Shown: positions 954-36,162, counted from the stretch's first letter. The stretch is 36,208 bases of DNA from Octopus bimaculoides (GCF_001194135.2 NC_068981.1:127998333-128034540), one strand, 5' to 3'. Notes: generated by a model not told the origin, from the letters alone. Program-made: numbers and translations.

Positions 954-1417
954 TCATTATTCAGTTTATTTCAAGATTTCTTGCCAATAAAGAAAGAGCC
1001 GGTTTCTAACCAAGGCTCCTTCACTGGAATTTAAGCATCAACAACGGGGTATTTTTGTATGTATGTATGTATGTATGTATGTATATATGTGAGGATTTGT
1101 ATGTTTTATGTATGTATTCTCATGCATATAGTTGCATATCTAGACATGCTTATATATATTTTAAATGATAAACTTTTGGAATGTATTACAGATTTTTACA
1201 GTTCCAGTGATGGATTGGATCTGTAGTCTTCGAATTAGCTTTCTCCTTTCTGGTTTTGAGAAGCCTAATTTCTCAAGATTGGTATTTAGGCAATGTGTTA
1301 CATATCCCAAGGCCCCCAATAATTACAGGTATAAACCTGAACTTGTAATCTGGATAGGGTAGCTGCAGATTTCTCAATAGTTCAGCATAGGTGTTCTCTT
1401 TTTCAATGATCTTCAGC
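954..1417 (-). mobile_element. 5'-truncated R4/Dong-like REL LINE, 3' end (lineage B, CATA-associated)
   Basis: The minus strand reads MLKIIEKENTYAELLRNLQLPYPDYKFRFIPVIIGGLG...LQIQSITGTVKICNTFQKFII* (stop 1161-1163). This is homologous to the C-termini at 9560-9870 and 10264-10518. It is bounded by (TATG)n at 922-953 and 1418-1540. Confidence 0.85.
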
Positions 1418-1448
1418 ATGTATGTATGTGTGTATGTATGTATGTAAT

Positions 1449-1480
<32 letters not shown>

Positions 1481-1540
1481 TGTTTGTACGTATGTATGTA
1501 TGTATGTATGTATGTATGCATGTTTGTATGTATGCATGTA
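1418..1540. repeat. (TATG)n tetranucleotide microsatellite
   Basis: Direct reading. Similar tracts lie at 922-953, about 7570-7660 (as CATA), 9264-9357, 10088-10160, 17230-17320, 20320-20355 and 35655-35701. Confidence 0.95.
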
Positions 1541-2128
1541 AGTAACACACGTACCTACACACACATACATTCATCTTTTCTATTTGTTACACTAACGGGA
1601 AATAATGTCTCTTAAGATTAGCTCAGACACTTAAAATTAGCTCAAACATTGTACTCTTCTTAATGTAATGTCGCAGAGCAAAAGCAACTAAATTAATCAT
1701 TACATAGCACTATATGAATGTTATTCTGAAGCGTCACTCACAGTGCGTGGGATCAATAACTTACAATTTAATGTATATATTTATTAAACTTCTAAGACGA
1801 TAAAAATTGTATCTTTCTAAATTTAAAATTACTATTTACTGATTGTGCGCGCGTGTGTCTGTATGTGTGTGTGTGAGAGAATGAGAGAGAGAGAGAGGCG
1901 AATGTGTTCATGCTTACACCAGCCTAAGAACATGCTTATGCCTTATCGCTCTACGTTCCGTAACTAAATGGTTCGGAAAAGAGATAACGATAATATAGGT
2001 AGCAGACTACACTAAGTATTAGGTTTAATATCGACTAAGTCCTTGATGCTAGTACCCCACCATGAGCACGATTCAGTAACTGAAACCATTAACAGAACGA
2101 TAGAATCTTTATATATGAAGATTGTTAC

Positions 2129-2314
2129 CAGTTATGATCACACTTGCTGAGGAAATAGATGAAGCTAAACCAAAAATTTTAATAACTTGGAATAGTGATG
2201 GTGTCCCGTAAATTAATCTTCTAATAATTTCATCACGAAACAATACGTCCGTGGCAAATTCATCATGTTTTTTTTTATTCGCAAAACATATCCAGACCCG
2301 AACGTTATTCAAAC
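2129..2314 (-). CDS. Candidate internal coding exon of an unknown gene (186 nt, phase 1-1)
   Basis: Acceptor tatttactcttctaataacAG|G at 2315/2314 and donor ACTG|GTAACA at 2129/2128. The open, non-repetitive frame reads GLNNVRVWICFANKKKHDEFATDVLFRDEIIRRLIYGTPSLFQVIKIFGLASSISSASVIITG. I recognise no homology, and it could be chance. Confidence 0.2.
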
Positions 2315-3539
2315 CTGTTATTAGAAGAGTAAATACGTTGTATTTGATTAGCAATAAAACAAAAAAAGTTCACCAACTACTTAATATATGCATTATAAAA
2401 CGAATTACTTTTAATAATAGAATCACAAAATATAAAATGCAATAACAAATAACACAGTTTTAAATTGGAAGGAGAGAGCAATAATCTTAAAAGGCAAAAT
2501 TATAGGTAATATCTCCTAAAATAATCTACTGTTTTGTGGGTTTAATATTGATTGACCATGCATCGAATTCTTTAAACAGACACAGAGATTTCTCGAATTG
2601 TCATTATATCTTTTTGTGATATGGAATTTATACAGCAGTGATATAGTGTTCAATTATTTATATATANNNNNNNNNNNNNNNNNNNNNNNNNNNNNNNNNN
2701 NNNNNNNNNNNNNNNNNNNNNNNNNNNNNNNNNNNNNNNNNNNNNNNNNNNNNNNNNNNNNNNNNNNNNNNNNNNNNNNNNNNNNNNNNNNNNNNNNNNN
2801 NNNNNNNNNNNNNNNNNNNNNNNNNNNNNNNNNNNNNNNNNNNNNNNNNNNNNNNNNNNNNNNNNNNNNNNNNNNNNNNNNNNNNNNNNNNNNNNNNNNN
2901 NNNNNNNNNNNNNNNNNNNNNNNNNNNNNNNNNNNNNNNNNNNNNNNNTCTCTATAATGACTATTGCTTAAACATTTTCTCGCACCGTCTCTGATGAAGG
3001 GATATATAGCCTTGGATTTTTTTTTTTATTTCACTCTGTTAATTTTTAGATATACACATGCTAATACACGACCTACGTTGGACTCCTCATTCGTATATTT
3101 ATCGAACCTGGAGCTTAACTATAGTCTGTCCATAGCACTTACTCAGCATTACCTGACACCTTTGGGGCTTCTTGACACCAATAGCTCTCATACCATATAT
3201 ATATATATATATATATATAAGGCACGTGCCGTCAGTAATTACTTAGGGTATGCAGTTGGTGACCTTTATGTAGTAAAACACAAAAATAACCGAAACACAA
3301 GCGCACAAGTGACTTGCAGGCAGATCTATTTCTGCCTCTGTAGCACGTAAAGGAAACGTTGTTGTAGAAATGTTCTCAGCACGTGTACTACAGTAGTACT
3401 ATGAATAGCTAAATACAGTGATTGAAAAGCAGGAGTGAATTATGCCTACCTAATCTACAAAAAGAAAAAAACAATGCATTTTGCATTTTATGCATAGTAA
3501 TCAGACAAACCTTCGTTGTTTATCTTGATATGAGATTAC

Positions 3540-3688
3540 CATGTCACGCACATATGGCTGTGATGCATGTGTATGATGCATGTGCCATCATGACTACCCT
3601 TATCATAGGGATAGTCATGATGGGTATACTGGGCTTCGGATATTTTTACCGCAGTGTCACTTTGACGGCATGCACTGCTCTCTCACTC
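3540..3688 (+). mobile_element. 3' end of a (TAA)n-tailed retroposon (family C)
   Basis: It ends GCACTGCTCTCTCACTC followed by AAT repeats (3689-3706). The identical terminus plus (AAT)n recurs at 5539-5591. The 5' boundary is approximate. Confidence 0.55.
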
Positions 3689-3706
3689 AATAACAATAAT
3701 AATAAT

Positions 3707-4809
3707 TTCCACCCTAAGGCGAACGTCCACAGGCTCTACATGAAGAGGTGTAAAGGTGGATGTGGGCTGATTAGCGTACGGGAGTGAAGCAACAGTGAAA
3801 GAAGAAGCATGGCAGAATATTTGGTAAATAGCAAACAAGACCTAATATTACATGCTGCTAATGCAAAACGATTTATCAAAAATGGACCTGAGAGTGCTAA
3901 TGAATTCCGATTACGGATAGGCAACGAGAGAGAAGAAACTCTGCTCTGCATGGAATTACATGGTCAGTTCCACCGTGAAGCTAAGAATTTAAAAAACCAG
4001 GAAGCATCATGGCGGTGGCTCTGCAAGAAAAACCTAAAAAAGAATACTGACATTGCTGTAAGAATACTGACATTGCTGCCCAGGATCAGGCATTGAATAC
4101 CAACTCAGTGAAAAGAGATATATGCCACATAAGTGCGACGAACCTCTGCAGAATGTGTCGGAAGAGGGTCGACAGCGTGACTCACATTGTTAGTGCTTGT
4201 GAAAGTCGTGTGCAAAAAGAGTACAAGCTCAGGTACGATAAGGTAGCCCCAAATCTTCACTGGCTACTATGCCGAAAGTATGGATATGAGGTAACGGGTG
4301 TTTGCTACCAACATACACCAGAAAAGGTAATAGACGAAAAGGGGAAGGCAAAACCCTCTGGGATGTTGACTTCCAGACAGACAAGGTGTTAGAGCACCGA
4401 AGGTCGAAATGGTAACCTTTAGGCAGGACAAACAAAAGTGCCTAATAATCGACGTGGCAGGGCCAGGAGATCAACATATTATCATGAAAGAAAGAGAAAA
4501 GATTGATAAATATGGAGACCTAAGAATTGAGATCGTCAAGATGTGGCAGCTTCGGGAGTCGAATATAAAGTCGAACATAAAGGTATTGAGTTCAATACCA
4601 CCAAAGCTGAAGAAACATCTGGAAACTTTAGAAATATCCCACAATCTAGGTGTATTGAAACAATTGGCATTACTTGGAACTGCACGTATATTGCGTAAAG
4701 TACTGTCAATCTGAGGTCCTTGTTGTGACTTGACAGACAGTACAATCCCCCGGTAGACACAATATCTTCAATCAACAGCATCACTATACTGGATACTGTG
4801 CGACGTCTT
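3707..4809 (+). mobile_element. 5'-truncated R4/Dong-like REL LINE (lineage A, TAA-associated): RT thumb end, CCHC knuckle, REL endonuclease, 3' UTR
   Basis: FHPKANVHRLYMKRCKGGCGL (post-RT motif), LHGQF, SWRWL, CRMCRKRVDSVTHIVSAC (C-X2-C-X8-H-X4-C), EYKLRYD (RHD motif), MVTFRQDKQKCLIIDVAGP...EKIDKY (PD-D/ExK region), ending LGTARILRKVLSI* at 4714. Frameshifted. It starts immediately after (AAT)n and ends in (TAA)n. Confidence 0.9.
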
Positions 4810-4810
4810 A

Positions 4811-4869
<59 letters not shown>
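4810..4869. repeat. (TAA)n microsatellite / LINE tail
   Basis: Direct reading, about 20 units. Related tracts lie at 5556-5591, 6131-6170 and 7178-7240. Confidence 0.95.
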
Positions 4870-4871
<2 letters not shown>

Positions 4872-5555
4872 GCCCGGATGCAGTACCAAGCAGTGACTCT
4901 CATGGCTTCTGATCTTAATTGATTGGAAGTGTTATCATGTATATTGTTTTGTCTTGGTATAAAAGATGGGCTACAACAAATATTCTGCTTAATACCACAG
5001 ATTTGCTTGTCAGTTGTTTAACCTTAACCAGTTGAGCATGTCCCTTAGTGGTTGACGATATGTGCATCTCTGAGCATGAGCAGAAGTAGTGGGGGACCAT
5101 CATAGCCATGTGTTGAGAGGNNNNNNNNNNNNNNNNNNNNNNNNNNNNNNNNNNNNNNNNNNNNNNNNNNNNNNNNNNNNNNNNNNNNNNNNNNNNNNNN
5201 NNNNNNNNNNNNNNNNNNNNNNNNNNNNNNNNNNNNNNNNNNNNNNNNNNNNNNNNNNNNNNNNNNNNNNNNNNNNNNNNNNNNNNNNNNNNNNNNNNNN
5301 NNNNNNNNNNNNNNNNNNNNNNNNNNNNNNNNNNNNNNNNNNNNNNNNNNNNNNNNNNNNNNNNNNNNNNNNNNNNNNNNNNNNNNNNNNNNNNNNNNNN
5401 NNNNNNNNNNNNNNNNNNNNNNNNNNNNNNNNNNNNNNNNNNNNNNNNNNNNNNNNNNNNNNNNNNNNNNNNNNNNNNNNNNNNNNNNNNNNNNNNNNNN
5501 NNNNNNNNNNNNNNNNNNNNNNNNNNNNNNNNNNNNNNGCACTGCTCTCTCACTC
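4870..5555 (+). mobile_element. Second family-C (TAA)n-tailed retroposon segment spanning an assembly gap
   Basis: It starts directly after the (TAA)n tail of the previous LINE. After the gap (5121-5538) it ends in the same GCACTGCTCTCTCACTC-(AAT)n terminus as at 3672-3706. Continuity across the gap is inferred. Confidence 0.5.
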
Positions 5556-5591
<36 letters not shown>

Positions 5592-5752
5592 TGCTTCCTT
5601 GGGACGGCCAGAATAATCAGGAAAGTATTAGATAGCTGAAAAGCACAAATAGCATGGTACCGTAGGCTGTAGGTAACAAGCCTGCTATGTATGCAAGACC
5701 CCAGGAGTTCCAACAAAACCTGTGATAAAAAGAAATATTAAAAATTATAATA
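5592..5752 (+). mobile_element. Extremely 5'-truncated R4/Dong-like LINE 3' tip
   Basis: Directly after (AAT)n it reads CFLGTARIIRKVLDS* (5592-5639), matching LGTARILRKVLSI* of the 3707-4809 element. A different 3' UTR follows and ends in ATAATAA. Confidence 0.72.
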
Positions 5753-5754
5753 AC

Positions 5755-5960
5755 GGTCTCAAATTTTGTTACAAGGGCAGTAATCCTGGGGGAGCAGATG
5801 AGTCGATTACAACGACCTCAATGTTCAACTGGTACTCATCTTATCACACCCGAAGGGATGAAAGACTACAGCGGAATTTGAACTCAGAACGTAGCGACGG
5901 GGCAAAATACCGCTAAGCATTTCACCTGGCGTGCTACCGATTCTGTCAGCTCGCAGCCGT
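5755..5960 (-). mobile_element. tRNA-derived SINE (family S1)
   Basis: The minus-strand head has an A-box-like TGACAGAATCGGT and B-box GAGTTCAAATTCC, followed by a central CTTTCATCCCTTCGGG..GATAA..GTACCAGT. Homologous copies lie at 5968-6130, 15755-15955, 16280-16420, 19657-19860 and 34455-34630. From memory the central block resembles the Meta/MESC SINE domain (unverified). Confidence 0.75.
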
Positions 5961-5967
5961 AAGTAGT

Positions 5968-6129
5968 TTCAAATTTTGCCAGTGTTCATCTGGTATTTAT
6001 TTCATTGACCCCGAAGGGATGAAAGGTCAAGTTAACCTGGGCGGAATTTGAACTCAGAACGTAAAGACAGGCGAAACGCCACTAAGCGTTTCGCCTGCTG
6101 TGTGCTAACGATTCTGCTAGCGCGCAGCC

Positions 6130-6130
<1 letters not shown>
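5968..6130 (-). mobile_element. tRNA-derived SINE (family S1), tandem second copy
   Basis: It has the same B-box (GGAATTTGAACTC on +) and central block as 5755-5960. Its 5' head abuts (TAA)n at 6131. Confidence 0.75.
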
Positions 6131-6200
<70 letters not shown>

Positions 6201-6206
6201 AAGAAG

Positions 6207-7177
6207 GAATATATTCACAGACACGACAGAGCTGGGACCTATATACACTGGAAGCTATGCCAACACTATGGAATAANNNNNNNNNNNNNNNNNNNNNNNN
6301 NNNNNNNNNNNNNNNNNNNNNNNNNNNNNNNNNNNNNNNNNNNNNNNNNNNNNNNNNNNNNNNNNNNNNNNNNNNNNNNNNNNNNNNNNNNNNNNNNNNN
6401 NNNNNNNNNNNNNNNNNNNNNNNNNNNNNNNNNNNNNNNNNNNNNNNNNNNNNNNNNNNNNNNNNNNNNNNNNNNNNNNNNNNNNNNNNNNNNNNNNNNN
6501 NNNNNNNNNNNNNNNNNNNNNNNNNNNNNNNNNNNNNNNNNNNNNNNNNNNNNNNNNNNNNNNNNNNNNNNNNNNNNNNNNNNNNNNNNNNNNNNNNNNN
6601 NNNNNNNNNNNNNNNNNNNNNNNNNNNNNNNNNNNNNNNNNNNNNNNNNNNNNNNNNNNNNNNNNNNNNNNNNNNNNNNNNNNNNNNNNNNNNNNNNNNN
6701 NNNNNNNNNNNNNNNNNNNNNNNNNNNNNNNNNNNNNNNNNNNNNNNNNNNNNNNNNNNNNNNNNNNNNNNNNNNNNNNNNNNNNNNNNNNNNNNNNNNN
6801 NNNNNNNNNNNNNNNNNNNNNNNNNNNNNNNNNNNNNNNNNNNNNNNNNNNNNNNNNNNNNNNNNNNNNNNNNNNNNNNNNNNNNNNNNNNNNNNNNNNN
6901 NNNNNNNNNNNNNNNNNNNNNNNNNNNNNNNNNNNNNNNNNNNNNNNNNNNNNNNNNNNNNNNNNNNNNNNNNNNNNNNNNNNNNNNNNNNNNNNNNNNN
7001 NNNNNNNNNNNNNNNNNNNNNNNNNNNNNNNNNNNNNNNNNNNNNNNNNNNNNNNNNNNNNNNNNNNNNNNNNNNNNNNNNNNNNNNNNNNNNNNNNNNN
7101 NNNNNNNNNNNNNNNNNNNNNNNNNNNNNNNNNNNNNNNNNNNNNNNNNNNNNNNNNNNNNNNNNNNNNNNNNNNNN
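6207..7177 (+). mobile_element. 5'-truncated R4/Dong-like LINE, mostly hidden in an assembly gap
   Basis: After (TAA)n-(AAG)n it reads EYIHRHDRAGTYIHWKLCQHYGI (RHD motif, homologous to EYKLRYDKVAPNLHWLLCRKYGY). A gap of about 900 N (6277-7177) is followed by (TAA)n. The gap size is compatible with the remaining REL domain plus 3' UTR (inference). Confidence 0.68.
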
Positions 7178-7272
<95 letters not shown>

Positions 7273-7296
7273 GATGATGATGATGATGATGATGAT
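7178..7296. repeat. Compound (TAA)n-(GAT)n microsatellite
   Basis: Direct reading. Confidence 0.95.
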
Positions 7297-7393
7297 AGTG
7301 GTGGAGGTGATGAGGATTTCTGAGATTAAAAATGATTTATTTTATTAGATTTCATCATGGTTAATTTATATCATCAGCATTAGCAATAACAAC

Positions 7394-7425
<32 letters not shown>

Positions 7426-7758
7426 ATGGATAAGAAGAAACCATATCGAATTAAAGAATAAAAAGACCCAAACAAAGAAAAAAAAACGTTGCAGCATATA
7501 TTTTCTGTTGTTACAGATGCATAACAGCTGCAGTCTACCTGTGCTTGCAATTGGCAGTGAAGTATATTTGCATACACATACATACATGCATAGATACATA
7601 CATACATACATACATACATACATACATACACACATACATACACACACACATACATACCTATATACACTCATACATATATATATATGTATGAGTGTGTGTG
7701 TGTATCGTGTGTGCGTGTATATATATGTGTGTATTAATAATTAAGTATATATATAATA

Positions 7759-7789
<31 letters not shown>

Positions 7790-8052
7790 TATGCATGTAC
7801 ACTATACATACATACATATATACACACGGGCATATACACAGACATATGTACACTGTGTGGCAGTACTTATTCTATATTCTCTCTCACTATAAAGCATAGT
7901 TGCATCATATGTGCAATATGTAGCTTTAGCTACCTTCTTCATTGTGAAGTATAGCTGCTGCATATACGGCTTCACTGTAAATATTCCTATACATTAACTG
8001 CTTGGTACATGAGTGCATTCTGACTATTTTTTCTGATCGTCATATTGCACAA

Positions 8053-8310
8053 ATTGTTGTTGTTTTTTAGTTGTTTAGCTTCAGGTTAACTCTGACCGAG
8101 GAGTCTTGTGAACAAAATTGTCCCAGCTGAGAGCTTTCAATTGTTTGTTTTCTTACATAACAAAAACTATATTGTCAAATGAATCCTTCCTTAAGACGAC
8201 AGGTGTCATTTGAGAGTTTTCGCTGTTGTTTCTTGGAGTTTGAGAAACCACACAGGAGCTACCTCTTTGGTTCGAGATATACAAGTGGCTCGTATAAATA
8301 AACACTAAAT
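8053..8310 (-). mobile_element. Decayed (CAA)n-tailed non-autonomous retroposon (family T)
   Basis: Its reverse complement resembles the 31135-31395 copy, with a ...CTAAACAAC tail (TTGTTGTTG on +). Heavily diverged. Confidence 0.42.
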
Positions 8311-8896
8311 CTGATTTTCTACCAACCGATCGCTAGCTTCTTCTCGGTTCCCCTCCCTCGTTGCCACCGTTATGTAATCTAGCCCAAGTGCAGTTTATTT
8401 ATTCTGTAATATTCATGCAACGAATCGTATCGCTCTGCTCGAACAACATACTACCACAGAGATGCATTTGTATAGCTTCTTACATGCAGTAACACTGATA
8501 TCTAATGCATTACAGTATATAACTGTCCACTACTCCACTCATTGTAAGTAGATGAAGTAGATGAAGCAAACAGAATTAGCACTTCAAACCACACATATGC
8601 ACATGCGTTCACACAAGCACATTAAACCTAAATCTAACCGCTCCCTCCATCAATCCATTCATTTAACAATATATTCGTCTAGTGATCCTTCTCTCTGTAT
8701 CTGTCACATAAACTTGTGCATGTATTATGCACATATGTATATATGTATGTATTACACATACATACATATAAATATAAACACACACGTATGCGCATACATT
8801 CTTTTCTTTTACAGGCTTCAATAATCGGACTGGGGCCAAGCTGAGCATTGCCTTCAAGGGTGTATATTCTTATATGAACAAATATGTAAAGTCTAG

Positions 8897-8954
<58 letters not shown>

Positions 8955-8973
8955 CATACATACATACATACAT

Positions 8974-9026
<53 letters not shown>

Positions 9027-9380
9027 CATGTGATAATACCTGTCTACAAACTCACACACCCTACACATACGTATTCTGTTTGGTCTTAACATATCCTTTC
9101 GGAGAAGATTTCTTATAGAACTAACATATATTACATGGCGAAATAATCAGTAGCTGCAATGTAACAGCAATATATTCTGAAATACATGACTAAACGTTGC
9201 CTTCAGCATTTTGGCGCAGAATTCAATTCGATTAAACTTGATTTTATTCGCATATGTATTCATGTATGTACGTATGTATGTATGTATGTATGTATGTATG
9301 TATGTATGTATGTATGTATGTATGTATGTACGTACGTATGTAGTACTAAGTATGTATGTGTGTGTGTGTGTGTGCATGCA

Positions 9381-10087
9381 TGCATAATTTTTCTTTGTGT
9401 CTTATTTAAGCTCTTGAGAGTCCAAGCCGATTGCTAACAAAGCGACGAAGCTTTTTGAGTTAAGAGAATTCTTGCTGTTTGTAAATATGTGATTGAGTTT
9501 GTGTCGGTTGAACTGTCGATGCGTACACTCAAGTCTGTGCATCTATTCACATAAGAATCTCAGATGGAGAATTTTTGGAGTGTCTTGCAAATCTTCACTG
9601 TACCACTAATAGATTGGATTTAGAGAATCGGCGTCACTTTCTTTTGCTCTTTTTCCATTAAACTGAGTGTTTCTAGGTTTTTGAGCGAATTTGACCATTT
9701 TTTTGTACATAATCTGATGCGCCTATGATGATAGGTACAAATAAGAATTCATAATCAGAATAAAAGAGCTGTAAGTTCCACATTAATTCATCATAAATGT
9801 TTTCTTTTTCTTGCACTTTTGATTGTACATTCACATCCGCTGGGCAGCTGACACTACAGCAGTGCATGACTTTTGCTCCCTATCCAACAAAATATCAAAC
9901 CTCTTCTGTTTGCACCGAATTCATGTTTTTATTGGGGTGTTCCACCATTATTCCTTGTTTTTAAAGATGTGAATACCTGCTGGTTCTGATATGCCTTTGA
10001 TGTGTACGTCAGTGCAATCATTCCTGCGGGTAGCATTGTACATAATTTTTGTAACTGTATCATCCCTCATAGGCAGGTAATATCTCG
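9381..10087 (-). mobile_element. 5'-truncated R4/Dong-like REL LINE (lineage B)
   Basis: The minus strand starts [18 protein letters not shown], then CCSVSCPADVNVQSKVQEKENIYDELMWNLQLFYSDYEFLFVPIIIGA, and ends IQSISGTVKICKTLQKFSI* (9560-9562). It is bounded by (TATG)n/(TG)n at 9264-9375 and (TATG)n at 10088-10160. Confidence 0.85.
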
Positions 10088-10160
10088 TATGTATGTATGT
10101 ATGTATGTATGTATGTATGTATGTATGTATGTATGCATGTATGTATGTATGTATGTATGT

Positions 10161-12790
10161 CTCTTCTATCTTTTAATTATTATAAATCGTCCACTGAGGA
10201 GGGAGCCAGTTTCCAACAAAGATACAGGGCTCCATCTTTGGGATGTGGTTAACACAGACAAAGTCATATTTGTAACTTGAGAAAGGTCTTGCATATTTTT
10301 ACTGTTCCATTCACAGATTGCACTTGTAATGTACGAATCAGCCGGTCGATTTCTCTTTCTGCAAATCCCAGTTCATCCAGATTGTCCCTTAAGCATTTAC
10401 TAACAAAACCTAGTGCTTCAGTTATTATTGGTATGAATATGAATTCATAGTCTGGATATAGAAGCTGGAGGTTTCGAGGCAGTTGTCCATAGATATCCTC
10501 TTTTTCTTTGATTTTCAAAGAGATATTTATATCTGCAGGGCAGCTAACCTCTATGATGGTGCATACCTTTGCCCATCTGTCCCAAACAACAATATCCGGA
10601 CTGTTATGTTTACATTTGACAGAAGTTTTGATGGGAATATTTCATCAGTATTCCCTGAGTTGGTTTTTATGAGTGTATTCCATAACGAGATTTTCTAAGT
10701 TTATTTCAGGACAGTCTTTTTTGCGAATGGCATTGTAAATTGTTTTAGCAACAACATCGCGCCGCATAGGGAGGTATTACCGTGACAATATTTTAAAAGC
10801 TGCTAATCACATGCGTGATGCCTACACATGCGGTTGCACCTTGAGATTACAAGAGTGTCACTGTCTCTCTTGTTCAACAGGTGCTTTGTGGCAATCTCCT
10901 GTTCCTCGATTGCAAACGCATAGCCTTCAAAATGTAATGTGATGTAATGGTCTTGTGTCGAAGAGAGGCTGCTCTTCGTGTCAATTCTGCTGTCCCCTTC
11001 AAGCTTCCGGGCAACATACCCATGTATAGTCTTTTTTTTTGTATGCTGAGTGATTTCCATCCAGGAGTTCTATGAGGTAAGAGAGCCCAGCTGTTTTAGG
11101 GCTGTATAGATCATCAGGAAAAGAGTGCTTCTTGAGGAGCTCACTGTCAACTCGTACACTGCATTAATATATTTATTTTTGCTGCTGTTGTTCAGCAGGT
11201 GCTGCCTGAGTGATAACATACGGCATACGAAGGCCGTCTACACTGATTTCAGGCCTCTACCGCCTTCATCTCTTCTTAGGTAGAACCTGTCAACATTATT
11301 GTTTCTGTGGAAGTTCCCAGTTGTTGTCAGGATTTTGTGGATTTTGATATCTATGGAGTGGATTTCTTCTACAGACCAATCAACTATTCTAAATGATACT
11401 GCAAATGCATTGTGGGATATTGTTTTGTTGTAAAAGGAGAGTTCCGGCTGCCATATTTTCCTAAGTCTAGTGTCATATTCTCGGATCACTCTATCTTTAT
11501 TCACAGTGCCTTCATATGATACATTTTCATCTATGCCTAAGTACTTGTAACATTCTTTGTATGGAATGGGGGAGATAGAGATACCGTTGATGCGCAGGTT
11601 TTGGGTTTGGGGGACTGACTTTCCTCGTTCTATAACCAAATACGAACATTTTTTTTTGCCAAATTCCATGCCTATATCAGCTGAAAATGTTGTTATTACT
11701 ACCAGTTGTTTTTTTTTTGTTTTTTTGGCATTGTTAACACTTTAGCATAAATCTTGAGGTCGTCTGCAAAGAAATTATGAGTTACATTGATATTTCTAGC
11801 AGTTGAAGATCCTAACATGTAACCATTTGTTTTCTGCCGTAGGAACCATAATGGGTTCAGTGCCAAAATGAAAAGAAGCACAGAAAGATTATCTCCCTGG
11901 AATACTCCCTTTGAAATGCCTATAGTATCTGAAACAATTATTCTGTTCTCAGCTGGAAGGATGAGAATTGTTGTCCATGTCTTTGTAAGTCTCTCTATAG
12001 CAGCCACGAATGAGGGATAGAGTTGAATGCCTTCTTATAGTCATACTGTCACAGTGTTTTTACGCTGTTTTCTTACTTCAGACAGTACAGCTTTGTTTAT
12101 TAAAAGTTGTTCGGCACATCCCCACACTCCCTTCTTTCCACCAGCCTGTTCATCAGTCACAATGTTGTTCGACTCACAATGGTCTTGGAACAATCGGTTG
12201 AGGCAACATGTGTACAGTTTGTACTTAATGTTTAGGCAAGCAATGGGCCTGTAGTTTCCTGCCATCTCGGTGATTTCATTTTTGGCAACAAGATTTGTCC
12301 TTGCTGTAGTAAGCCAATTCGGTATATCAATCTGACCTTCCAAAGTCCTTTTGAACATACATATCAACTGGTTTCTATAAAATGTCAGCTTCTTGTACCA
12401 ATATCCAACTATTAGATCGCTTCCAGGTGCTTTCTATTCTACAGTTTGCCTACTGCTATAGCGAAGGTTTCTGCATCAATTTTGTATGTTTTACTGTTAG
12501 TGTTGGTATATTATTCTCTCTCAATTGTATTTAACGATGATTCATTCAGGTTTAAATCCCCAGAATGATTGTAGATCTTCTTGGGAGGGAGCTTTCTTAA
12601 TGGTAATGTTTTCCTTCCTCATCTCTCTGTATAATGCTTGTGGGTTGGAAGCAAACTTGCAATTGATACTGACTCATTCAAAAATTCGCATGCGATAGCA
12701 GAGTTTCTCGCACATCGTCCGGAGTTCATGTTTTAAAGTGATTAGCTTTCCCTCAAGAGTTCCATGTGAAGAGTTGCCATAAAGTTTCGT
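10161..12790 (-). mobile_element. Large decayed R4/Dong-like LINE (lineage B): RT, remnant CCHC, REL endonuclease
   Basis: The RT motifs are APGSDLIVGYWYKKL, NYRPIACLN, EQAGGKKG..GCAEQLLI, GVFQGDNLSVLLFILALNPL, FFADDLKIYA, YKYLGI and DRFYLRRDEGGRGL. They are followed by YLPMRRDVVAK, PDIVVW..IIEVSCPAD and a stop at 10264. There are many frameshifts. The 3' UTR runs into the (CATA)n tail, and the 5' limit is approximate. Confidence 0.92.
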
Positions 12791-13134
12791 TAATTTTTGT
12801 CCAAGGTAGAGTTGGTGAGGTGTAAACTCATTTTTCTCCTCCTCACCACCACCACCACCACCACTACCATATTCTTCATTATAACCACCACTGTCACCAA
12901 CATTGTTACCACCCCGTCCCCACCGATGCAGACAGTCAAGTCGGGCCCTTTAGTATAATATGAATAAAAATATTACAGTATCAAGTATCACATTAGATGC
13001 GGAAAATGAATTTCATTGGTGTTTATTAGACAACTCGCTGTTACACACACACACACACACACACACACAACAACAACAACAACAACAACAAACAAACACA
13101 CACACAATTATAACGATCACCAGCCAGCGTGGAA

Positions 13135-16980: not shown

Positions 16981-17659
16981 TGTGTTACGAAGCGTTTCTA
17001 CAACGGAAGCTATTGGTAGCAGGTTTCTTTCTTTAATATATTTCTCTTATGTCTCTTTAATTCTTATCCTCCAGAACACTAGTAACGTAAGTGGAATGAA
17101 ATGGCTGGAGCAGGAAATCGTGACTGGATTGCAGATACAACATTCTGAAAGCATAAATATATTTTATTATACACGGTTTCGTGCCTTCTTATTGGATAGT
17201 ATATGATGTGAAATGATCGTATAATATATATATGTATGTATGTATATATGTATGTATGTATTTGTGTATGTATGTATGTATGTATGTATGTATGTATGTA
17301 TGTATGTATGTATTTGTGTATACATATATACATTACATACACACACACCCACAGACGCACACACACATACATATAAAACTTACTTGGAAGAAGATGCGTG
17401 GCGTTCAATCATATAATAATATAAATAATCTATAATATAAATTGTCTATAATATAAATCTGACATGGGCGAATGTTGTATTCTTTCTTGTCTTGAGGTTT
17501 ACAGCCAAACGGCTGGGTGGATTCGCGTGAAAAATGGCACACATGTGGAGACTGGTGCATAGATTGGAAATCGATTAAAACAACCTGTGTGCATGCGCGC
17601 GCGCGCGTGTGTGTCAGTGTGCGTGAATATCAAGTCTCAGTCTATTTCCGATATTATTA

Positions 17660-19860: not shown

Positions 19861-20530
19861 AAATAATAATTAAAAAGTAAACAACTACAACAATATTTAC
19901 ATCCAGTTATTCATGTTCCAGAATCTAGATAGGTTTAAATAAATTACTTGTACTGTAATTCTTTTTTGAACTAAATAATAAAGAATAGAACACACTGGAT
20001 GTTTTGTTCATATACGTAAAACTGTATGCAGTATAATACCTGTGTGCTATATCATATACTTGAATGTGTATATGTCAGTTTAAACTGGGGGGAAACAATG
20101 TGAACGAAGTCTGTGCAGAAGCCCATGGGTTCAACTGTATAAGTGATTACAAGGTCCATCTTTGTTACATTGTGATATATTATAAAGATTGCTTGAAAAT
20201 TACGTCAAGGACAGAAATTTCTGGGAAATACCCATACACTTAGACTATACTTCAATGAGTAACTCTTTTGATCGTGCAACTAGAATGTTTATTTGTCGGA
20301 ATCAACGCAGGAGTCCATCATGTATGTATGTATGTATGTATGTATGTATGTATGTATATGTGTGTGTTTGTGTGTGTGGGTGTGGGTGTATATGCCTACA
20401 TGCATGTAAATGTGTCTCCATGCATGTGCTTATGTATCTGCATGTGTGTATTATGTATGCATGTTTGTATGTATATAACATTTAGGTTCCTTGGTATGTA
20501 CCCTTGTACGCTTGTACGTATATGTATGTG

Positions 20531-34630: not shown

Positions 34631-35493
34631 CTGTGGCTCCAATTGGTTTCGTTTAAGTTTGAATGATTATTATATTCTTTTCTACTCTAGTCACAAAGCC
34701 TGAAATTTTTTCTNNNNNNNNNNNNNNNNNNNNNNNNNNNNNNNNNNNNNNNNNNNNNNNNNNNNNNNNNNNNNNNNNNNNNNNNNNNNNNNNNNNNNNN
34801 NNNNNNNNNNNNNNNNNNNNNNNNNNNNNNNNNNNNNNNNNNNNNNNNNNNNNNNNNNNNNNNNNNNNNNNNNNNNNNNNNNNNNNNNNNNNNNNNNNNN
34901 NNNNNNNNNNNNNNNNNNNNNNNNNNNNNNNNNNNNNNNNNNNNNNNNNNNNNNNNNNNNNNNNNNNNNNNNNNNNNNNNNNNNNNNNNNNNNNNNNNNN
35001 NNNNNNNNNNNNNNNNNNNNNNNNNNNNNNNNNNNNNNNNNNNNNNNNNNNNNNNNNNNNNNNNNNNNNNNNNNNNNNNNNNNNNNNNNNNNNNNNNNNN
35101 NNNNNNNNNNNNNNNNNNNNNNNNNNNNNNNNNNNNNNNNNNNNNNNNNNNNNNNNNNNNNNNNNNNNNNNNNNNNNNNNNNNNNNNNNNNNNNNNNNNN
35201 NNNNNNNNNNNNNNNNNNNNNNNNNNNNNNNNNNNNNNNNNNNNNNNNNNNNNNNNNNNNNNNNNNNNNNNNNNNNNNNNNNNNNNNNNNNNNNNNNNNN
35301 NNNNNNNNNNNNNNNNNNNNNNNNNNNNNNNNNNNNNNNNNNNNNNNNNNNNNNNNNNNNNNNNNNNNNNNNNNNNNNNNNNNNNNNNNNNNNNNNNNNN
35401 NNNNNNNNNNNNNNNNNNNNNNNNNNNNNNNNNNNNNNNNNNNNNNNNNNNNNNNNNNNNNNNNNNNNNNNNNNNNNNNNNNNNNNNNNNNNN

Positions 35494-35530
<37 letters not shown>

Positions 35531-35569
35531 GGTGTGTGCATGTGTATGTATATGTACAAGTATGTATAT

Positions 35570-35655
35570 AGTTATTTAGTCTTATTTCAAGATTTCATAC
35601 CAAGAAAGAAAGTCGGTTTTTAACCAAGATGCAAGGCTCCTTCATTGGAATTTCT
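35570..35655 (-). mobile_element. 3' UTR tip of a lineage-B R4/Dong-like LINE
   Basis: TTATTTCAAGATTTC..AAGAAAG..GGTTT.TAACCAAG..AAGGCTCCTTCA.TGGAATTT matches 965-1035. It is flanked by TATG-type repeats. Confidence 0.7.
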
Positions 35656-36162
35656 ATGTATGTTTGTATGCATGTATGTATGTATGTATGTATGTATGTA
35701 TGGATGGATGGATTGATGGCTGGCTGGCTGGATGGATGTATGCATCTTCGGGTCGTCGATGACTAAGCCGGCTCCTTTCAAGGTGAGCCTGGTGAGTAAA
35801 ATCAAAACTTGCCAAAAGAACGGATAAATCCAGCGTAAGTTCAATGATTATCTAGCAAGAGCAGAGACACTCAGGAATTCCGAGTAATTGTCCGGCGTGC
35901 TTTTGTTAAGGTATGTTTCTAGGAGAAGGTTACTCTGATGTAAAACCATATATGCAGGGATTGGTATCGAACATTTTGAGGATCTGTGTCCCGAGCTTGA
36001 GATCAATGCACTTCCACGTTCCTGAGCATGCGAGTCATATTGGTACTAATCTTTTTTCGCGCTTTGGCTTCACTGGACCATATCAACTGGGTGGAAAGGG
36101 GCCCTGAAGTGTTGTGATGATCATACTCACCTACGAGTCGATAGCCACCATGTATACATGTA

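Follow-up and report, generated by a model that had tools for sequence, protein, structure and literature searches.

Several dead retrotransposon copies in a 36,208-nucleotide stretch of Octopus bimaculoides DNA (GCF_001194135.2 NC_068981.1:127998333-128034540; the whole stretch is referred to as the window) very probably stem from a long interspersed nuclear element (LINE) that inserts specifically into the tetranucleotide microsatellite (ACAT)n. Judging from their sequences, these 5'-truncated copies, here called lineage B, would belong to a LINE with a restriction-like endonuclease (RLE) of the R4/Dong group or one adjacent to it. They would represent at least three diverged subfamilies, with ACAT of the target on the sense strand in all cases. 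The DNA of the window is eukaryotic and rich in repeats, and lineage B comprises four or five dead copies of this Dong/R4-like element, all on the minus strand. An original prediction, made from the sequence alone, had proposed specific insertion into a (CATA)n microsatellite, which is the same repeat as (ACAT)n in another phase. The proposal was supported in this study by the junctions of ten relatives and by the unrelated DNA that lies beyond the 5' array in the three of them that were tested.

The longest lineage-B copy, copy 3 (10161-12845, minus strand), is 5'-truncated and dead. A stitched reading of 821 aa, with 14 in-frame stops and two frameshifts, was obtained from the minus-strand translation of 10100-13050. 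A tBLASTn search of the window with this protein found three coding copies, all on the minus strand. The coding similarity of copy 3 runs from 12748 to 10267 against the stitched protein, and to approximately 12838-12845 against the intact homologue P0001, whose residues 262-1157 were aligned. The 5' truncation lies at about residue 255-262 of an open reading frame (ORF) of about 1150 aa. The stop codon is at 10264-10266, and the 3' untranslated region (UTR) occupies 10161-10263. The degraded protein shows a reverse transcriptase (RT) with a FADD motif (approximately 11532-12277), a Cys/His region and a C-terminal endonuclease core that reads SPDIV..IIEVSCPAD..KIKEK (approximately 10500-10600). 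Copy 2 (9383-10086, minus strand) is truncated at about residue 653 of the stitched numbering and retains a frameshifted C-terminal endonuclease region. Its coding part (residues 653-821) runs from 10076 to 9563, followed by the stop codon at 9560-9562 and a 3' UTR at about 9383-9559. Copy 1 (955-1417, minus strand) is truncated at about residue 738; its coding part (residues 738-821) runs from 1416 to 1164, with the stop codon at 1161-1163 and the proximal 3' UTR at 1118-1160. The coordinates given for the copies in the original prediction held when checked, except for the end of copy 3 at 12790. This copy extends about 55 bp further, and the (GGT)n of its 5' flank had gone unnoticed.

Copy 1 carries an internal (TACA)n tract (1056-1117) and a terminal 3' UTR module with a conserved hairpin (955-1055). 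Because of the internal tract, the terminal module may be a separate mini-insertion of about 100 nt, like the 35570 piece. The latter (35570-35654, minus strand) is 85 nt long, consists only of the terminal 3' UTR module including the hairpin, and was 80% identical over 84 nt to 957-1032 by blastn. These two modules were nearer to each other than either was to the 3' UTRs of copy 2 or copy 3. Either extreme 5' truncation or membership of a short non-autonomous partner family could account for them.

Protein identity to copy 3 was 56-65% for copy 1 and 38-56% for copy 2. The 3' UTRs of the coding copies differed in length (103, about 180 and about 206 nt) and were alignable in the terminal module only. 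By these differences, the copies appear to be separate insertions of at least three diverged subfamilies and not duplicates, in agreement with the independence of the three coding copies claimed earlier. If the pieces had instead arisen when a single segment was duplicated locally, repeat included, copies 2 and 3 would be the most obvious products, as they are adjacent and in the same orientation. However, the protein identity of only 38-65% between copies rules out a segmental duplication, and the truncation points and 3' UTR lengths also differ; we gave this origin practically no weight. Runs of N lie between copy 1 and copy 2 (2667-2948, 5121-5538 and 6277-7177), and none lies in or against a coding copy. 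Their only effect is that the distance of copy 1 from copies 2 and 3, and its linkage to them, is uncertain. Another gap (34714-35493) cuts only the 3' flank of the 35570 piece.

The arrays at the junctions were then mapped with Tandem Repeats Finder (TRF), and all (ACAT)n arrays described here lie on the minus strand. Copies 3 and 2 stand head-to-tail around (ACAT)18 (10087-10160; 97% matches), a single array that adjoins copy 3 on its 3' side and copy 2 on its 5' side. On the 3' side of copy 2 (9253-9382), a short (CA)n precedes (ACAT)n (TRF period 4, with (TG)n at 9353-9374). Copy 1 has (ACAT)n directly against its 5' break (1418-1544) and on its 3' side (922-954). The 35570 piece has (ACAT)14 on its 5' side (35655-35710), whereas the ACAT/(CA)n tract that adjoins its 3' end (35494-35569) is degenerate and runs into the assembly gap. 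The 5' breaks of copy 1 (1417/1418) and copy 2 (10086/10087) are internal to the ORF and lie directly on (ACAT)n. Two earlier observations were thereby confirmed: all four pieces end at their 3' side in this repeat, with the short (CA)n at copy 2 and the degenerate tract at 35570 included, and both truncated coding copies have it directly at their 5' breaks.

We compared these junctions with random placements. An array in the correct orientation is found no more than 3 bp from six of the eight lineage-B ends, whereas the maximum was two in 200,000 random placements, and the per-end chance of array adjacency was about 0.002. The original prediction had worried that the adjacency might be due to chance, (TATG)n being very common in the genome, or to a self-made tail. 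The window does contain 12 (ACAT)n arrays, which make up about 2% of its non-N bases. However, the random placements together with the relatives rule out chance adjacency, as the orientation was identical throughout and the pattern was repeated in ten other samples; the probability left to it is vanishingly small. No further lineage-B remnants were found beside the other arrays of the window (7576-7684, 17227-17321, 20320-20375 and others) by blastn with the four 3' UTR modules. These results confirm that the repeat association of the lineage-B pieces is real.

The second part of the earlier worry was that (ACAT)n is only a self-templated 3' tail, with the 5' adjacency arising when new copies entered older tails by chance or weak preference. 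Short tandem repeats form the ends of many LINEs. Where the microsatellite tail is self-made, as in the RTE and CR1/L2 types, the repeat is at the 3' end only and the DNA on the 5' side is unrelated. Several features of the window are as expected from such a tail. The repeat is at the 3' end of every copy, the 5' array of copy 2 is the 3' array of copy 3, copy 3 itself lacks (ACAT)n on its 5' side, and the 3' UTR of copy 1 has an internal ACAT tract, the (TACA)n at 1056-1117 that the earlier description had missed. On the other side, the 127-bp array 5' of copy 1 is followed by unique DNA, and the window holds (ACAT)n arrays without a recognisable copy. The window alone cannot separate a target from a self-made 3' tail, and the decision for a target is supported by the sequences of the relatives.

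The relatives came from contigs of database homologues and from a metagenome collection scanned with an alignment of 26 homologues. The best database homologues were 34-48% identical and had intact ORFs of about 1150 aa in elements of about 3.9 kb. For the junctions we used relatives with 29-48% identity, at ten loci from ten samples, which include the octopod Argonauta hians (L085). All visible junctions in these ten relatives border (ACAT)n, always on the sense strand. The repeat is on both sides in L001, L003, L004, L005, L086, L087 and L085, the last with a degenerate 3' tract. It is at the sole visible junction in L002 and L088 (5') and in L089 (3'). The 5' flank is thus (ACAT)n in two ORF-truncated window copies and in nine relatives with a visible 5' junction. 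Several of the full-length 5' ends in the relatives have a AGGACGTG-like motif in common, at 15-25 nt from the junction, and this indicates that they are true termini. In full-length relatives, (ACAT)n directly adjoins the conserved 5' termini.

The DNA around the arrays of the relatives also bears on the distinction. The 3' arrays of L086 and L087 are short (36 and 20 bp, respectively) and are followed by unique DNA. In the three loci tested (L002, L004 and L086), the DNA beyond the 5' array was unrelated to the element 3' end, so that no such end stands upstream of the array. The insertion in L004 splits a compound microsatellite, (CCAT)n(ACAT)n on one side and (ACAT)n(AGAT)n on the other, with the flanks continuing into different repeats. 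The short 3' arrays ending in unique DNA, the unrelated 5' DNA, the split microsatellite of L004 and the conserved 5' termini would not arise under the tail-only explanation, which we consider improbable. These results suggest that (ACAT)n was the target of the lineage-B elements.

Other short sequences were seen between (ACAT)n arrays beside LINE copies, at 492-1566 and 5778-6043 in L086 and at approximately 2470-2553 and 6806-6880 in L004. In L004, a unit of about 70 nt (..CAAGGCTGAGTCTCTACTGGACTACACCTTATGTTT..) is seen on both sides of the element, beside (AGAT)n and (ACAT)n. The short units in these two loci may be other repeat-homing or satellite units. Rfam matches to mir-297, mir-1277 and mir-3149 in L001-L005, L043 and L085-L089 were rejected. 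They are the (ACAT)n arrays themselves, at 27-54 bits, far below the gathering scores.

The copies are truncated at different 5' points, as target-primed reverse transcription (TPRT) yields. Truncated and full-length copies alike are flanked by the repeat on either side, in a single fixed orientation, and one copy lies head-to-tail in the array of another. In the mechanism that we propose, the predicted N-terminal three-helix domain described below would read the repeat, and the endonuclease would nick the (ATGT)n strand. With the element RNA as template, held by the protein via the 3' UTR hairpin, cDNA synthesis would start from the freed 3'-OH, and pairing of a terminal (ACAU)n with the target might assist the priming. 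Nicking of the (ATGT)n strand would account for the fixed orientation, and incomplete cDNA synthesis for the 5' truncations. Every insertion would leave target on both sides, which would give head-to-tail copies such as copies 3 and 2 and turn arrays into nests of copies.

Not all relatives border (ACAT)n. L006, L007, L008 and L009, from the samples ERZ1740067 and ERZ1740060, are bordered by (ACTT)n instead. They fall at no fewer than two places in the tree, each beside an ACAT-flanked element of another sample (L088 and L089). This suggests from the sequences that the target was switched at least twice in parallel, or that a specificity module was exchanged. Such switches could arise if the target were set mainly by base pairing between the RNA end and the nicked DNA, and not by protein recognition; the target could then shift with the terminal repeat of the RNA. 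The (ACTT)n-flanked elements from two samples, set against their (ACAT)n-flanked nearest relatives, and the fuzzy 3' junctions between element and repeat agree with such pairing. However, a strand-specific nick in the repeat would still be required. The protein also differs: at predicted helix 3 (residues 65-77 of P0001), L006, L007 and L008, all three (ACTT)n elements with an N-terminus, read L-R-D-[Q/K]-A. Ten ACAT-flanked loci aligned with them and 21 N-terminally aligned proteins, which are partly overlapping sets, read L-x-[Q/E/T]-x-[A/S/V/P], with D in none. A D confined to (ACTT)n elements suggests a determinant in the protein or the exchange of a module, and we regard a target set mainly by RNA pairing as rather unlikely. 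The correlation of the helix-3 D with the target is a lead from sequence comparison, not a result. It is possible, as a tentative extension, that these elements form an old and widespread Dong-related RLE LINE clade homing to tetranucleotide microsatellites, in which (ACAT)n changed to (ACTT)n in two or more lineages, both from the same two samples, and the switch coincides with the change of Q/E/T to D in helix 3.

The domain architecture was examined in copy 3 and its relatives. Pfam found RVT_1 in copy 3 (E 8.6e-10) and in every one of the 26 relatives in the alignment, 23 of which also had zf-RVT. Among the same 26, there was no match to an APE family and none to an N-terminal zinc finger, and no Myb/SANT domain was found by Pfam in the N-terminal region of the relatives. 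The nuclease residues P1047, D1048, D1069 and K1079 are invariant in the alignment of the relatives, and the motif PD..E..D..K is of the PD-(D/E)xK type. The nearest solved structures were R2 proteins (9nl3, 9dou and 8gh6; E 3e-28 to 2.5e-15), with the region from the RT through the CCHC knuckle aligned. AlphaFold predicted three helices (25-38, 46-57 and 65-77) in residues 1-105, with a mean predicted local distance difference test score of 72.6. When this N-terminal model was compared with the PDB by Foldseek, no match reached significance (best E 0.25), and the weak matches were of the helix-turn-helix type only. The window copies all lack the N-terminal domain region.

In neighbour-joining trees, copy 3 was nested among ACAT-flanked elements, with P0117 (locus L090) as the outgroup. 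L090 is followed by (AAT)6 and then by unique DNA. The label Dong/R4-like comes from the architecture and from this (AAT)n-flanked nearest outgroup, and by both, the assignment of lineage B to the R4/Dong group or to a position next to it is supported at the sequence level. The R4/Dong-like character proposed in the original prediction was upheld by the RT with FADD, the CCHC knuckle, the C-terminal endonuclease, the absence of an N-terminal zinc finger match and the (AAT)6-flanked outgroup. Another relative, L024 (JAAGOD010055388.1; 34% identical), is an insertion beside the 3' end of 18S rRNA. The sequence on its 3' side is ..GTAAAAGTCGTAACAAGGTTTCCGTAGGTGAACCTGCGGAAGGATCATTA, and TAAAAGTCGT can be read at the contig's 5' end as well. 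From the position of L024, the wider group includes a member specific for ribosomal DNA (rDNA).

We next analysed the 3' UTR hairpin. It has the form (A/G)CCUUR, a stem of 5-7 bp, and YCGG, and lies about 35-65 nt before the 3' junction. The hairpin is present in the terminal module of copy 1, copy 3, the 35570 piece, L001, L003, L004, L005, L085 and L086, with compensatory changes. Paired cells amounted to 93.4%, compared to 69.5% in shuffles, and the covariation score was 0.762, compared to 0.308 in shuffles; none of 500 shuffles was as high in either measure. When the partner was slid by 1-3 columns, only 20-40% of the cells were paired. With the four window copies alone, RNAalifold found no more than a weak hairpin in the full terminal module, and it became convincing once the relatives were added. 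By analogy with R2, the hairpin is likely a putative protein-binding site on the RNA.

The 5' ends of the relatives were also searched for structure. Rfam detected no ribozyme family in 16 loci at E <= 1, with the limit that the Rfam models of the hepatitis delta virus (HDV)-like ribozyme are narrow, and minimum free energy folding of the relatives' 5' ends gave no shared or recognisable structure. In the (AAT)n-flanked, Dong-like L090, a C-rich motif (GGTCCCAACCTCCTACGCTGGGC) was noted near the 5' end (49-71). Weaker C-rich versions occur in L001 (approximately 185-215; ..ATGGTCTCCTCGC..) and L003 (approximately 35-50; ..GGCCTCCGCGG..).

Several points weigh against (ACAT)n-specific insertion by an R4/Dong-like element, or limit the evidence for it. 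The 5' junction of copy 3 is (GGT)n on the element strand (12846-12869; plus-strand (CAC)n at 12844-12869 by TRF) and not (ACAT)n, and it is the sole junction that misfits. A short (CA)n parts the 3' end of copy 2 from (ACAT)n, and the 3' flank of the 35570 piece is degenerate and cut by the gap. The (ACAT)n on the 5' side of the two pieces of about 85-100 nt may come from an internal 3' UTR tract, which makes it weak evidence for a target on that side. The window is rich in (ACAT)n, with six arrays lacking a recognisable copy, and part of a 3' array could have been copied from the RNA. Many relatives lie on short-read contigs that end inside the repeat, with the far side unseen. The trees were built by neighbour-joining, lack usable support values and do not include reference sequences of R4, Dong, HERO or NeSL. 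The hairpin segments were chosen by eye before the covariation test, which favours its result. With these points taken into account, we still consider specific insertion into (ACAT)n very probable.

The window also contains an element with a different flanking repeat. Lineage A (3707-4711, plus strand) is a 5'-truncated fragment of a Dong-like RLE LINE. It matched P0117, P0118 and P0120 at E 5e-38 to 6e-31, and P0001 at E 1e-3 only. Lineage A has (TAA)n-type repeats on both sides (3690-3706 and 4811-4869), which gives a control for repeat-specific homing within the window. The loci L043 and L090 share (TAA)n as the bordering repeat with lineage A, whereas (ACAT)n, or (ACTT)n in two samples, stands next to lineage B and its relatives. 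A perfect 20-bp tandem duplication (two copies of AAGAATACTGACATTGCTGT) was found at 4040-4078, inside the lineage A coding remnant. A second lineage-A-like fragment (6207-6275), 69% identical to residues 833-855 of P0117, follows (TAA)n(AAG)n within 6131-6275 and runs into the gap at 6277. In addition, a 22-nt end (gcactgctctctcactcaataa) followed by (TAA)n occurs at 3669-3706 and at 5539-5591, the latter directly after the gap at 5121-5538. Its appearance is that of a 3' end from a further element associated with (TAA)n, which may be non-autonomous.

R4/Dong elements have been described as having an RT, an RLE and a diverged N-terminal Myb/SANT-like domain without zinc fingers, and as inserting into rDNA or microsatellites (PMC7998251). 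The target of Dong is (TAA)n in most insects, molluscs and cnidarians (PMC7998251). Lineage B resembles Dong, an R4-clade element of Bombyx mori, Anopheles, Biomphalaria, Darwinula and others, in its single ORF with an RT and a C-terminal RLE and without N-terminal zinc fingers, and in its insertion into a microsatellite that then flanks both sides (PMC3812793, PMC7998251). The nearest outgroup found here consists of (TAA)n-flanked Dong-like elements (L090 and lineage A). However, the target of lineage B is the tetranucleotide (ACAT)n and not (TAA)n, so that lineage B falls outside Dong in the strict sense, and the protein identity to the TAA-flanked group is only about 29-32%. HDV-like ribozymes have been reported at the 5' ends of Dong and R4 (PMC3774820), whereas none was detected here with the narrow Rfam models. 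R4 of Ascaris and other nematodes shares the clade label, the domain plan and strict target specificity, but it inserts at one 28S rDNA site, whereas lineage B lies in a simple repeat.

Other LINEs are also specific for microsatellites, with known targets including (ACAY)n for Waldo, (AC)n for Mino, (TC)n for Kibi, (TTC)n for Koshi, (TAA)n for Dong, (TG)n for Togen and those of some HERO families (PMC3812793, PMC4640811). Waldo, of the R1 clade in Anopheles gambiae and Forficula, has a target that includes (ACAT)n (PMC3812793). However, Waldo has an N-terminal APE-type endonuclease, whereas the relatives of lineage B have a C-terminal PD-(D/E)xK nuclease and no APE match; the shared (ACAT)n would be convergent. 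Togen (NeSL-related), Kibi and Koshi (Tx1 group) and some HERO families resemble lineage B as microsatellite-specific LINEs (PMC4640811, PMC3812793), but they belong to other clades and use other repeats, and Kibi and Koshi are APE-type. R2 gave the best solved-structure match over the RT and CCHC, and its TPRT model was borrowed for the mechanism proposed here. It differs in its N-terminal C2H2 zinc finger(s) and Myb and in its 28S rDNA target, whereas the relatives of lineage B have no zinc fingers and a microsatellite target. By sequence and structure matching (E 3e-28), R2 appears to be a distant homologue only.

In the original prediction, (ACAT)n was not known as a target of the R4 clade. 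In the searchable literature we found only (TAA)n and rDNA for R4/Dong, and (ACAT)-type repeats for none but Waldo, an APE-type element that is unrelated; the family may well be catalogued in Repbase or Dfam, which lay outside this search. In Octopus vulgaris, five recently active Dong-R4 families with 1129 insertions have been reported (PMC13282606). In the octopus papers, Dong-R4 appears as one of the recently active LINE families, or a Dong consensus is mentioned, and no target is named (PMC13282606, PMC9115989).

LINEs that home to microsatellites were already known, and what appears to be new here is the (ACAT)n target for the R4/Dong-like group. If it is conserved, an (ACAT)n-specific branch in cephalopods would help explain how numerous Dong-R4 elements spare genes, and it would also explain how arrays turn into nests of copies. 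The interruption of (ACAT)n bears on repeat annotation and on the design of microsatellite markers. RLE LINEs such as R2 are under development for site-specific DNA insertion. Close relatives with the short, defined targets (ACAT)n, (ACTT)n and (TAA)n offer material for studying how the protein or the RNA picks the site. If the N-terminal domain or RNA-DNA pairing sets the target, the clade would be a natural series of re-targeted, site-specific retrotransposons.

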